64,000 nt of DNA. Source: Macrostomum lignano (lineage: Eukaryota). Where the stretch lies: assembly GCA_002269645.1 (NCBI GenBank), contig NIVC01001798.1, forward strand, positions 124,001 through 188,000, written 5' to 3'. Below, in pieces: positions 33,070-39,485 of this stretch (position 1 is its first letter; the number at the start of each line of letters is the position of its first letter). A program made the translations under genes and the position numbers. The notes beneath the pieces were generated by a model that saw only the letters and a list, made by a program, of their open reading frames with translations, made no database searches and was not told the DNA's origin.

Positions 33070-35564
33070 TAGATAGATAGATAGATAGATAGATAGATAG
33101 ATAGATAGATAGATAGATAGATAGATAGATAGATAGATAGATAGATAGATAGATAGATAGATAGATAGATAGATAGATAGCTAGATAGATGGATAGATAG
33201 ATAGATAGATAGATAGATAGATAGATAGATAGATAGATAGATAGATAGATAGATAGATAGATAGATAGATAGATAGATAGATAGATAGATAGATAGATAG
33301 ATAGATAGATAGATACATAGCTAGCTAGATAGATGGATAGATAGATAGATAGATAGATAGATAGATAGATAGATAGATAGATAGATAGATAGATAGATAG
33401 ATAGATAGATAGATAGATAGATAGATAGATAGATAGATAGATAGATAGATAGATAGATAGATAGATAGATAGATAGATAGATAGATAGATAGATAGATAG
33501 ATAGATAGATAGATAATAGATAGATAGATAGATAGATAGATAGATAGATAGATAGATAGATAGATAGATAGATAGATAGATAGATAGATAGATAGATAGA
33601 TAGATAGATAGATAGATAGATAGATAGATAGATAGATAGATAGATAGATAGATAGATAGATAGATAGATAGATAGATAGATAGATAGATAGATAGATAGA
33701 TAGATAGATAGATAGATAGATAGATAGATAGATAGATAGATAGATAGATAGATAGATAGATAGATAGATAGATAGATAGATAGATAGATAGATAGATAGA
33801 TAGATAGATAGATAGATAGATAGATAGATAGATAGATAGATAGATAGATAGATAGATAGATAGATAGATAGATAGATAGATAGATAGATAGATAGATAGA
33901 TAGATGATAGATAGATAGCTAGATAGATAGATAGATAGATAGATAGATAGATAGATAGATAGATAGATAGATAGATAGATAGATAGATAGATAGATAGAT
34001 AGATAGATAGATAGATAGATAGATAGATAGATAGATAGATAGATAGATAGATAGATAGATAGATAGATAGATAGATAGATAGATAGATAGATAGATAGAT
34101 AGATAGATAGATAGATAGATAGATAGATAGATAGATAGATAGATAGATAGATAGATAGATAGATAGATAGATAGATAGATAGATAGATAGATAGATAGAT
34201 AGATAGATAGATAGATAGATAGATAGATAGATAGATAGATAGATAATAGATAGATAGATAGATAGATAGATAGATAGATAGATAGATAGATAGATAGATA
34301 GATAGATAGATAGATAGATAGATAGATAGATAGATAGATAGATAGATAGCTAGATAGATGGATAGATAGATAGATAGATAGATAGATAGATAGATAGATA
34401 GATAGATAGATAGATAGATAGATAGATAGATAGATAGATAGATAGATAGATAGATAGATAGATAGATACATAGCTAGCTAGATAGATGGATAGATAGATA
34501 GATAGATAGATAGATAGATAGATAGATAGATAGATAGATAGATAGATAGATAGATAGATAGATAGATAGATAGATAGATAGATAGATAGATAGATAGATA
34601 GATAGATAGATAGATAGATAGATAGATAGATAGATAGATAGATAGATAGATAGATAAATAGATAGATAGATAGATAGATAGATAGATAGATAGATAGATA
34701 GATAGATAGATAGATAGATAGATAGATAGATAGATAGATAGATAGATAGATAGATAGATAGATAGATAGATAGATAGATAGATAGATAGATAGATAGATA
34801 GATAGATAGATAGATAGATAGATAGATAGATAGATAGATAGATAGATAGATAGACAGATAGATAGATAGATAGATAGATAGATAGCTAGATAGATAGATA
34901 GATAGATAGATAGATAGATAGATAGATAGATAGATAGATAGATAGATAGATAGATAGATAGATAGATAGATAGATAGATAGATAGATAGATAGATAGATA
35001 GATAGATAGATAGATAGATAGATAGATAGATAGATAGATAGATAGATAGATAGATAGATAGATAGATAGATAGATAGATAGATAGATAGATAGATAGATA
35101 GATAGATAGATAGATAGATGGATAGATAGATAGCTAGATAGATAGATAGATAGATAGATAGATAGATAGATAGATAGATAGATAGATAGATAGATAGATA
35201 GATAGATAGATAGATAGATAGATAGATAGATAGATAGATAGATAGATAGATAGATAGATAGATAGATAGATAGATAGATAGATAGATAGATAGATAGATA
35301 GATAGATAGATAGATAGATAGATAGATAGATAGATAGATAGATAGATAGATAGATAGATAGATAGATAGATAGATAGATAGATAGATAGATAGATAGATA
35401 GATAGATAGATAGATAGATAGATAGATAGATAGATAGATAGATAGATAGATAGATAGATAGATAGATAGATAGATAGATAGATAGATAGATAGATAGATA
35501 GATAGATAGATAGATAGATAGATAGATAGATAGATAGATAGATAGATAGATAGATAGATAGATA
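33070..35564. repeat. (GATA)n microsatellite, left arm
   Basis: Direct reading. Confidence 0.98.
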
Positions 35565-35640
35565 TTCATAAGGCAGTTTGAAACTGCAAACCACGCACTC
35601 GGAAGATATTGAAGGTTACCAGTTGTCGAATGTTCGAAAA

Positions 35641-35681
35641 AAACCGATATTTCGGCCCAGACTGGGCCTTCGTCAGGGTTT
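35641..35681 (-). ncRNA. Minimal type I hammerhead ribozyme, copy 1
   Basis: AAACC-CUGACGA-A-GGCCCAG U CUGGGCC-GAAA-U-A-UC-GGUUU: conserved core, stem I AAACC/GGUUU, perfect stem II, palindromic AUAU in place of stem III, predicted cleavage after AUC at 35646. Confidence 0.85.
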
Positions 35682-37047: not shown

Positions 37048-38372
37048 ATTTATTCGGGTTTAAAAACAAATATATTGGCAGTGAAGTTATTGTAACATAA
37101 TTTCAATATATATATATGCTACTTTTGGGGGTGCACTGAGCAGTGTTGAGTAAAGATGTGTACGTATAATTAGTTAAAAACGTGAGTTGAAGCACGCTGA
37201 TTGGTTAAAGATTGGCAGCTTAAAGCCTTGCACAAAAAATATTAAAGATGTTAGGTGCTATAGAAAAACAGATTTAGAGCGTAGAAGTGTATGAATAAGC
37301 ATCTTGAAAAGTTCAACAAATAAGTTATTTACGCCCGTAGAATTGAGAACAAATATTAAATTAAAACAGAGCACTGAGAACTTTTCAAAAAGAAGTGCAA
37401 GTAAATAGATGTTATTACATAAACAGTAAATAAATAGAGTCGCCAGGCAGGCCACTAGTTGCAGTTGGCGGCGTCTGGTCACAGATCGCCGCCTGCACAG
37501 CCCCTGGTCACAGGCGACTGGGCACTGCAGATCAGTTGAGGCTAGATTATCAGTAGTAGTAGCACTAGTAGTTGCAGTAGTAGCTCGTAGTAGTAGTAAT
37601 GGAAGTAGTAGTAGTACAAGTATTAGTAGAGTAGTAGTAGAGCAGTCGTAGGCGTAGTCGTAGTAGAGACGTACTGGTAAGCAGTTATTTGAAGTAGCCA
37701 GGCAGGCCACTAGTCGCAGTTGGCGGCGTCTGGTCACAGATCGCCGCCTGCACAGCCCCTGGTCACAGGCGACTGGGCACTGCAGATCAGTTGAGGCTAG
37801 ATTATCAGTAGTAGTAGCACTAGTAGTTGCAGTAGTAGCTCGTAGTAGTAGTAATGGAAGTAGTAGTAGTACAAGTATTAGTAGAGTAGTAGTAGAGCAG
37901 TCGTAGGCGTAGTCGTAGTAGAGACGTACTGGTAAGCAGTTATTTGAAGTAGCCAGGCAGGCCACTAGTCGCAGTTGGCGGCGTCTGGTCACAGATCGCC
38001 GCCTGCACAGCCCCTGGTCACAGGCGACTGGGCACTGCGGATCAGTTGAAGCTAGATTTTCAGTAGTAGTAGCACTAGTAGTTGCAGTAGTAGTAGTAGT
38101 GGTAGTAGAGTAGTAGTAGTACAGTCGTAGTCGTAGCCGTAGTCGTAGTAGTGTCGTGCGTCTTAAATATTCAGCTGCAGAAATAGTACTCTTGCTTATC
38201 CCAAGTAGATTTTTGGCGGAGAATAGCTCGTATACGAAGATATTTTGTTGACAAACATGGCGAGCCTCAATAATAGTCCGGTCCTGGGTACAGATATTCA
38301 TAAGGCAGTTTGAAACTGCAAACCACGCACTCGGAAGATATTGAAGGTTACCAGTTGTCGAATGTTCGAAAA

Positions 38373-38413
38373 AAACCGATATTTCGGCCCAGACTGGGCC
38401 TTCGTCAGGGTTT
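38373..38413 (-). ncRNA. Minimal type I hammerhead ribozyme, copy 3
   Basis: Identical to copy 1. Confidence 0.85.
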
Positions 38414-39485
38414 ATTTATTCGGGTTTAAAAACAAATATATTGGCAGTGAAGTTATTGTAACATAATTTCAATATATATATATGCTACTTTTGGGGGTGC
38501 ACTGAGCAGTGTTGAGTAAAGATGTGTACGTATAATTAGTTAAAAACGTGAGTTGAAGCACGCTGATTGGTTAAAGATTGGCAGCTTAAAGCCTTGCACA
38601 AAAAATATTAAAGATGTTAGGTGCTATAGAAAAACAGATTTAGAGCGTAGAAGTGTATGAATAAGCATCTTGAAAAGTTCAACAAATAAGTTATTTACGC
38701 CCGTAGAATTGAGAACAAATATTAAATTAAAACAGAGCACTGAGAACTTTTCAAAAAGAAGTGCAAGTAAATAGATGTTATTACATAAACAGTAAATAAA
38801 TAGAGTCGCCAGGCAGGCCACTAGTTGCAGTTGGCGGCGTCTGGTCACAGATCGCCGCCTGCACAGCCCCTGGTCACAGGCGACTGGGCACTGCAGATCA
38901 GTTGAGGCTAGATTATCAGTAGTAGTAGCACTAGTAGTTGCAGTAGTAGCTCGTAGTAGTAGTAATGGAAGTAGTAGTAGTACAAGTATTAGTAGAGTAG
39001 TAGTAGAGCAGTCGTAGGCGTAGTCGTAGTAGAGACGTACTGGTAAGCAGTTATTTGAAGTAGCCAGGCAGGCCACTAGTCGCAGTTGGCGGCGTCTGGT
39101 CACAGATCGCCGCCTGCACAGCCCCTGGTCACAGGCGACTGGGCACTGCAGATCAGTTGAGGCTAGATTATCAGTAGTAGTAGCACTAGTAGTTGCAGTA
39201 GTAGCTCGTAGTAGTAGTAATGGAAGTAGTAGTAGTACAAGTATTAGTAGAGTAGTAGTAGAGCAGTCGTAGGCGTAGTCGTAGTAGAGACGTACTGGTA
39301 AGCAGTTATTTGAAGTAGCCAGGCAGGCCACTAGTCGCAGTTGGCGGCGTCTGGTCACAGATCGCCGCCTGCACAGCCCCTGGTCACAGGCGACTGGGCA
39401 CTGCGGATCAGTTGAAGCTAGATTTTCAGTAGTAGTAGCACTAGTAGTTGCAGTAGTAGTAGTAGTGGTAGTAGAGTAGTAGTAG

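Follow-up and report, generated by a model that had tools for sequence, protein, structure and literature searches.

A tandem hammerhead-bearing unit in microsatellites of Macrostomum lignano: a probable non-autonomous Penelope-like retroelement

Which kind of element places identical copies of a unit of more than one kilobase, each carrying a hammerhead-like motif but no reverse transcriptase (RT), head to tail inside a simple microsatellite? The question is raised by a 64,000-nt stretch of the flatworm Macrostomum lignano (assembly GCA_002269645.1, contig NIVC01001798.1, positions 124,001 to 188,000; hereafter the window), in which a 1366-bp unit is repeated in tandem within a (TATC)n tract. 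The array probably represents a young family of non-autonomous, "retrozyme-like" retroelements of the Penelope-like element (PLE) type, which are inserted into microsatellites as multimers and carry a 3' module resembling the pseudo-long terminal repeat (pLTR) of PLEs.

The 1366-bp array and its hammerhead motif

In the assembly Mlig_3_7 (NIVC), which has been built from PacBio reads with Canu, polished with Pilon and supplied with gene models from RNA-seq, and whose redundancy is known, the 1366-bp unit is present in 2.87 copies, and both this copy number and the 100% identity of the units depend on that assembly (PMC5730564). Self-comparison of the array at an offset of 1366 has yielded zero mismatches. 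The unit has a GC content of 0.435 and contains an internal 255-bp repeat, the copy number of which differs by locus and results in units of 1365/1366, ~1616-1621 and ~1888 bp. Elsewhere in the window no further fragments or inverted copies of the unit have been found. ORF (open reading frame) and Pfam searches have revealed no RT-sized ORF and no RT or endonuclease ORF within the unit or the window, and the sole ORF of at least 50 aa per unit has no Pfam match; among the window ORFs near the array, there is also no Rep/helicase ORF.

A 41-nt string, AAACCCTGACGAAGGCCCAGTCTGGGCCGAAATATCGGTTT, has exactly three matches on the minus strand, where shuffled sequences lead one to expect none. It starts with the first strand of a 5-bp helix I (AAACC/GGUUU), followed by CUGACGA, an extra A between A9 and G10.1, a helix II of 5-6 bp, GGCCC(AGUCU)GGGCC, that is closed by a G10.1-C11.1 pair, then GAAA, and finally a palindromic AUAU (A-UA-U), which replaces helix III, and C17. 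The extra nucleotide looked anomalous, yet it is a published hallmark of the minimal hammerhead ribozymes (min-HHRs) of PLEs, which are characterized by CUGANGA, an unpaired nucleotide between A9 and G10.1, the G10.1-C11.1 pair, a longer helix II, a helix I of only 4-5 bp, and palindromic positions 15.2/16.2 instead of helix III (PMC4209133). The motif shows each of the five features in the descriptor given by Cervera & de la Pena 2014 (PMC4209133). A descriptor that was written for this analysis and encodes these published features has found only the three sites in the window, and none in 400 Markov-simulated 64-kb windows searched on both strands. The core CUGACGA...GAAA...UAUC occurs in all three copies and has been seen identically in 12 more copies at three other loci, whereas an exact search of metagenome and viral collections with the whole string has given 0 matches. 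In the local minimum free energy (MFE) fold, helices I and II are formed and the core is open. By its anatomy, the motif can be assigned with good confidence to the PLE-type min-HHR class, with cleavage as a prediction. The initial annotation of this DNA had described three identical tandem copies without an RT or endonuclease ORF, each with a minimal type I hammerhead as in PLEs, and had named three cleavage positions; the copies, the lack of such ORFs and the motif class have all been borne out, and the positions coincide with C17 by standard numbering, the predicted cleavage site (Table 1).

Insertion anatomy and conservation across loci

The 1366-bp family has been found on three more contigs: NIVC01000001.1 (L002) and NIVC01002743.1 (L003), which were reached via the two M. 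lignano protein homologues of the unit's ORF, and NIVC01001007.1 (L004), which was reached by a whole-library HMMER search. L002 and L003 hold arrays of units with at least 98.6% identity, and L004 a solo copy with 82% identity to the window unit. At all four loci, the element is located inside kilobase-long (TATC)n in the same orientation, and every array or solo terminus seen ends with ...CCTT(A/T)TG(A/C)ATATC|(TATC)n, at a point 85 nt downstream of the predicted cleavage. The 5' junctions vary by locus: an ACT-rich point in the window, CAGACGCC in L002, a TTTAAAC filler followed by CTGTGACC in L003, and GACTACGAC in L004. Head-to-tail junctions are scar-free. The non-microsatellite flanks of the window and L003 have nothing in common except arrays of a 273-bp unit considered below, and L002 offers no comparison, its flanks being microsatellite throughout. 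The combination of a fixed 3' end, random 5' truncation, microhomology to the target and scar-free junctions points to target-primed reverse transcription of a multimeric or circular template. Four loci that always lie in (TATC)n, with a common 3' end and variable 5' ends, thus support the retroelement reading that had been proposed from the window. An HDV-like (hepatitis delta virus) ribozyme at the unit junction was considered for the fixed 3' end and has been rejected, as a descriptor scan of the junctions gave 0 matches in the 1366-bp family and a single poor match in the 273-bp family, and Rfam gave none in either. HDV-like ribozymes are found at the 5' ends of R2 and RTE long interspersed nuclear elements (LINEs).

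Comparison with the diverged L004 copy sets the 3' part of the unit apart. The block that includes the hammerhead has retained 93-100% identity, compared with 76-82% for the internal repeats and about 75% for the tail, and the conservation stops exactly at the last base of the 3' strand of helix I. Within the tail, the hairpin has retained its pairing in L004 through a U-A to U.G change. These patterns support a putative function of the 3' module; they speak for the ribozyme no more than for the promoter-like segment upstream of it, which is conserved to the same degree. The CCAAT/TATA-like block is located 60-170 nt upstream of AATAAA and helix I and resembles the U3-R layout of long terminal repeats (LTRs); with such an arrangement, ribozyme cleavage would be in competition with polyadenylation. 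The succession of a promoter-like block, a minimal hammerhead and a short tail looks like the pseudo-LTR of a PLE.

RNA-seq-derived gene models are present on the hammerhead strand at L002, L003 and L004; owing to this origin they imply transcription of that strand, which is thereby indirectly supported. At L003 (10001-16085), the 498-aa chimeric model P0002 consists of host coding sequence spliced at AG (..GTGACCAG|ACGCC) into a 5'-truncated element and ends at the stop of the element ORF, and the element can therefore supply a terminal exon on the hammerhead strand.

The ORF of the unit, 347 aa long, is free of stops over 1040 nt, in contrast to 16 and 25 stops in the other two frames of the strand, and the idea that it reflects pure ACT-repeat composition has been rejected for this reason. 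Its ATG is positioned in the preceding unit, 9 nt short of the boundary, so that only a junction between two units connects it to the body of the ORF. No homologues outside the element family have been detected among 5.8 billion clustered proteins or among 1.84 billion representatives, and an exact look-up found the protein not on record; the sole homologues are named Macrostomum lignano proteins, which are themselves element-internal ORFs. The ORF mentioned in the initial annotation is hence present, but it is intact in only three of nine units across the loci and is not conserved in L004, where ATG is changed to TTG and the internal repeat measures 214 bp, not a multiple of three, with loss of the reading frame. 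Because conservation across the family fails, a coding function is unlikely.

Two further observations have been made at L002. Two 5'-truncated copies (2458-3519 and 5833-6894) with the identical 5' junction CTATC|CAGACGCC are found 2.3 kb apart in one microsatellite and could be derived from duplication through the microsatellite or from assembly redundancy; the first of them carries five private substitutions, including G1.2 to U in helix I. At 7514-8740, one unit is interrupted by a ~1.2-kb insertion, which is bounded by the terminal inverted repeats CAGTGTTGGGCAAGTTACT.../...CCCAACACTG and has duplicated 8 bp of its target, CTTACCAG. It looks like a hAT-like miniature inverted-repeat transposable element, and the array has thus existed long enough for another transposon to insert into it.

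The 273-bp family and the explanations weighed

The window contains a second tandem family in the same kind of microsatellite, which has a 273-bp unit. Its 3' end, ...CGCTATCTACTATC, is fixed in the window and L003, and its 5' start is variable: L003 harbors two 1.6-unit arrays within an (ATCT)n tract (12623-13063 and 14587-15027) with a different 5' start. Neither a hammerhead core, in the motif and descriptor searches, nor an Rfam match has been found in the 273-bp array. The predicted fold is stable, with an energy of -100.8 kcal/mol (z = -3.9). The junctions of this family, TATC|TATAGCCAGGACC, and of the 1366-bp family, TATC|TGTACCCAGGACC, have the motif TATC|TRTASCCAGGACC in common, which within the window is found solely at the unit junctions of the two families. 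The 3' tail sequence is not common to both, and relatedness beyond the junction motif has been rejected, since the local alignment score is no better than that of shuffles. As a family without hammerhead makes such arrays, hammerhead cleavage and circular RNA are not required for them. We infer a common machinery for the two families, which can dispense with the hammerhead in forming arrays.

For the non-autonomous PLE-type element, the following course may be proposed. The minus strand would be transcribed, with multimeric RNA as the product of arrays already present. (GATA)n.(TATC)n DNA would be nicked by an RT/endonuclease acting in trans, and the 3' end of the GATA strand would pair with UAUC in the junction motif UAUC|URUASCCAGGACC, thereby priming cDNA synthesis. 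The RT would then copy more than one unit of the multimeric or circular template and stop at a random point. Arrays formed in this way would have one fixed 3' end, would be cut at random at the 5' end and would contain a non-integer number of identical units, joined head to tail without scars. The hammerhead would be a conserved, inherited part of the module; pairing of two copies via their palindromic AUAU could enable it to cleave multimeric RNA. To the anatomy, multi-locus pattern, microsatellite context and conservation, which are observed, this course would add an RT-mediated integration, a PLE partner and a priming site.

Several points weigh against the PLE-type assignment. No autonomous PLE with the same 3' block has turned up, the M. 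lignano genome not having been DNA-searched for one; the published repeat table of the species lists no PLE class, and we have found no literature on M. lignano PLEs, hammerheads or satellites. The Rfam 15 hammerhead models have given no match at gathering score in the window or the array, and none at E<=10 on 4.2 kb or an 86-nt slice, although these models may not cover min-HHRs without helix III; permissive runs on the window, the array, the 86-nt slice and the 273-bp array have resulted merely in chance mir-34 and sRNA matches. The dimeric hammerhead fold with a 4-bp AUAU helix III is predicted at -25.2 kcal/mol and is not thermodynamically favoured, as two monomer folds reach -35 and the MFE of the cofold is -47.5 kcal/mol. 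No covariation is visible, because all copies are near-identical, and the stem changes seen only weaken pairs, namely the G1.2 to U change in helix I of a solo copy in L002 and, as the one difference of the L004 hammerhead, a G to A change in distal helix II, after which a GC stem of 4 bp is left; both changes are uncompensated. The 273-bp family forms like arrays in the same microsatellite without a hammerhead. Finally, a 3' hairpin 12 nt from the end next to a microsatellite is also typical of the tails of stringent LINEs and short interspersed nuclear elements (SINEs) and of Helitron ends.

A full retrozyme cycle, in which the minus-strand RNA cleaves itself into 1366-nt monomers that are circularized and copied in a rolling-circle mode by a PLE RT, is unlikely, though quite conceivable. 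It would fit the complete min-HHR per unit in at least two consecutive units, which is the operational definition of a retrozyme, as well as the 100% identity of the window units at a non-integer copy number, the scar-free junctions, the retention of the hammerhead in the diverged L004 relative, and the ATG that meets the ORF body only across a junction. The 3' ends, however, lie 85 nt past the cleavage site, and the cleaved end ...AAAUAUC, although it also matches the target, is never the junction. The unit lengths of 1365, 1621 and ~1888 bp within the single L002 array are unexpected from one monomer circle and weaken this cycle, as do the 273-bp arrays without any ribozyme. Moreover, the predicted circle is 48% paired (z = -2.8), unlike rod-like retrozyme and viroid-like RNAs, the dimer fold is disfavoured, and only low in vitro cleavage activity has been reported for PLE min-HHRs (PMC4209133).

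Rather doubtful is a broader proposal, according to which the two families, with their common junction motif, microsatellite and orientation, reveal a (GATA)n-specific retrotransposition system with RT start at an internal motif of multimeric or circular RNA. The hammerhead would be an optional accessory, and the 1366-nt element a protein-coding circular or multimeric RNA, the latter because the start codon joins the ORF only across the junction.

We give little credence to a SINE-like element that is moved by a LINE with a 3' stem-loop and a (TATC)n tail, and in which the hammerhead-like motif would be a relic or coincidence. The fixed 3' end, the variable 5' truncation, the hairpin 12 nt from the end and the microsatellite directly after it would agree with such an element, and LINEs constitute 1.66% of the M. 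lignano genome, with no PLE class in the published repeat table. Precise head-to-tail multimers, however, are untypical of LINE-mobilised SINEs and typical of PLEs (PMC8557442), the microsatellite is present on both sides and is kilobases long, and no 3' tail sequence is common to both families. The motif, in addition, is conserved, has all PLE min-HHR features and is very unlikely by chance (0 of 400 windows).

A non-autonomous, Helitron- or Helentron-like rolling-circle DNA transposon that forms tandem multimers would account for the palindromic hairpin ~12 nt before a conserved 3' end and for the tandem copies, and retrozymes have been noted to be similar to Helitron-like elements in their distribution as well (Li et al. 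2026, bioRxiv 10.64898/2026.07.22.740005); such a transposon is nevertheless very improbable, as there is no 5'-TC or 3'-CTRR terminus, no array start at a defined 5' end has been seen (all are cut at different internal points), and a PLE-type hammerhead is present with no Rep/helicase ORF nearby. Equally remote is a non-mobile origin, be it a tandemly duplicated host gene, a satellite or an artefact of the assembly, in which the hammerhead-like string would be due to chance: the 100% identical units in a repeat-rich PacBio assembly of known redundancy, the gene models annotated on the unit and the stop-free frame would suit it, but not the four contigs with unrelated flanks, invariably (TATC)n, and different 5' junctions, the ORF broken in six of nine units and without ATG and frame in L004, the restriction of protein homologues to the family in a search of 1.84 billion representatives, or the 0 motif matches in 400 simulated windows.

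Surroundings and relation to known elements

Table 1. Coordinates of the two tandem families and their parts within the window (+1366 and +2732 denote the same feature in the following units)
Feature	Position	Strand	Remarks
Whole 1366-bp array	35560..39485	-	5'-truncated unit 39485-38293, full units 38292-36927 and 36926-35561; 100% identical
(TAGA)n = (TATC)n microsatellite	33070..35564	.	adjoins the array's 3' end as read on the minus strand (Tandem Repeats Finder, TRF)
(TAGA)n microsatellite	39483..44768	.	adjoins the array's 5' end as read on the minus strand (TRF)
Internal 255-bp (85-codon) repeat	36072..36757	-	2.7 copies per unit; ACT-rich plus GC-rich segment (TRF)
Internal 255-bp repeat, further units	37438-38123, 38804-39473	-	
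Unit junction motif TATC|TGTACCCAGGACC	36914..36930, 38280-38296	-	common to the 273-bp family
85-nt tail	35561..35645	-	predicted cleavage site to invariant 3' end ...CCTTATGAATATC; contains the hairpin
Tail hairpin GCAGTTTCAAACTGC (GCAGUUUCAAACUGC)	35573-35587	-	12 nt before the 3' end; pairing kept in L004
PLE-type minimal hammerhead, copy 1	38373..38413	-	predicted cleavage after C17 at 38378
PLE-type minimal hammerhead, copy 2	37007..37047	-	predicted cleavage after C17 at 37012
PLE-type minimal hammerhead, copy 3	35641..35681	-	C17 at 35646
Conserved 3' block	35637..36027, again at +1366 and +2732	-	unit positions ~900-1290; 93-100% identity to L004
CCAAT boxes	35834-35838, 35845-35849	-	in the conserved 3' block; the first kept in L004, the second not
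TATA-like (TA)5	35741-35750	-	in the conserved 3' block
AATAAA	35683-35688 (+1366, +2732)	-	in the conserved 3' block, overlapping the 5' strand of helix I
347-aa ORF	35892..36935	-	sole ORF of at least 50 aa per unit
347-aa ORF, further copies	37258-38301, 38624-39358	-	the first full, the second 5'-cut
273-bp unit x 5.4	51090..52553	-	100% identical; within (GATA)n, same orientation as the 1366-bp array
(GATA)n around the 273-bp array	50949-51104, 52552-53125	.	embeds the array

Besides the two families (Table 1), the window contains an intact 353-aa mariner/Mos1-type transposase ORF at 20174-21235 on the plus strand (HTH_48, HTH_32, Transposase_1), which is on record for contig NIVC01001798.1. 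Three other plus-strand frames, one open over 679 aa (5633-7669) whose Mutator-transposase match is weak and below threshold, an ORF fragment with a ubiquitin C-terminal hydrolase domain (8400-8867) and an ORF with a WSC domain (23057-23524), are probably exon or transposable-element remnants. The window is unusually rich in minisatellites (at 1-2955 and numerous further sites), the periods of which range from 15 to 51 bp and the array lengths from about 190 to 3000 bp, and also holds the tetranucleotide arrays (CTGT)n at 14797-15727 and (CTAA)n at 18975-19494; several of the repeats create long artefactual ORFs, e.g., one of 916 aa at 27-2777. A 49-51-bp minisatellite with AGCCAATCA is located at 24658-25190, 29903-30568 and 53613-53940. 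The first two of these arrays are in inverted orientation at a distance of about 4.7 kb, with a 21-bp minisatellite (27655-28716) between them, and they could be the ends of a larger composite element.

With regard to known systems, the unit resembles the PLE min-HHRs (PMC4209133) in the core, the unpaired nucleotide, the G10.1-C11.1 pair, the long helix II, the short helix I and the palindromic 15.2/16.2, as well as in the position of the motif near the 3' end of a tandem repeat and in the flatworm host, cf. the min-HHRs of Cercyon in Schistosoma; it differs in having no RT ORF. Autonomous PLEs (Penelope/Poseidon, Neptune, Nematis, Hydra; Naiad/Chlamys; PMC8557442) form partial tandems, are frequently 5'-truncated, carry the hammerhead near the 3' end of the pLTR and show a bias towards microsatellites, and this insertion anatomy is shared by the M. 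lignano element. Unlike these, it has neither an RT nor a GIY-YIG ORF, it is associated with (GATA)n, while the microsatellite targets reported for PLEs are (TA)n, (CA)n and (C)n (PMC8557442), and no inverted 5'-truncated copy is found beside the window array.

Animal non-LTR retrozymes (PMC7229834; Li et al. 2026) have in common with the unit the head-to-tail repeats, one type I hammerhead per unit, the absence of an RT, a GC content below 45-50% and a proposed dependence on PLEs. Li et al. (2026) define an active non-LTR retrozyme operationally by TRF tandem repeats with at least two consecutive complete canonical or minimal type I hammerheads; the array falls under this definition, and the retrozyme label of the initial annotation agrees with it. 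The accompanying statement that the unit is several-fold larger than usual has turned out to be overstated: monomers of 150-450 bp (PMC7229834) and of 51-972 bp, at a TRF period capped at 1000 bp (Li et al. 2026), have been reported, and the units of 1366-1888 bp are above this range chiefly because the cap made them undetectable. Most invertebrate retrozymes contain canonical hammerheads with loop1-loop2 contacts, from which the PLE minimal type, that of the M. lignano unit, has been set apart (PMC7229834). Further differences are the long ORF, the internal 255-bp repeat, the predicted RNA with its 48% pairing, and the strict association with (GATA)n in a fixed orientation. The LTR retrozymes of plants (PMC4918200) are likewise non-autonomous hammerhead retroelements of a similar size class (600-1000 nt), but they possess LTRs, a primer-binding site and polypurine tract, type III hammerheads and a high GC content and are mobilised by a Gypsy RT, none of which applies to the M. 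lignano element.

The kind of element, a PLE-derived, non-autonomous, tandem hammerhead element, is already known; new in this case are the strictness of its association with (GATA)n, the unit size, the presence of an ORF and the sibling family without hammerhead. If the assignment is true, a free-living flatworm would be added to the hosts of PLE-type hammerhead tandem elements, and such elements would be shown to reach lengths of more than 1 kb, above the period at which the most recent survey stopped. The two families with the same target and junction motif would provide a clean natural comparison for the long-standing question of whether the hammerhead is needed for PLE tandem insertion, and since M. 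lignano is tractable by transgenesis, cleavage, circular RNA and mobilisation could be tested in vivo. Part of the tandem-repeat and microsatellite load that hampers the assembly of the M. lignano genome would thereby be explained.

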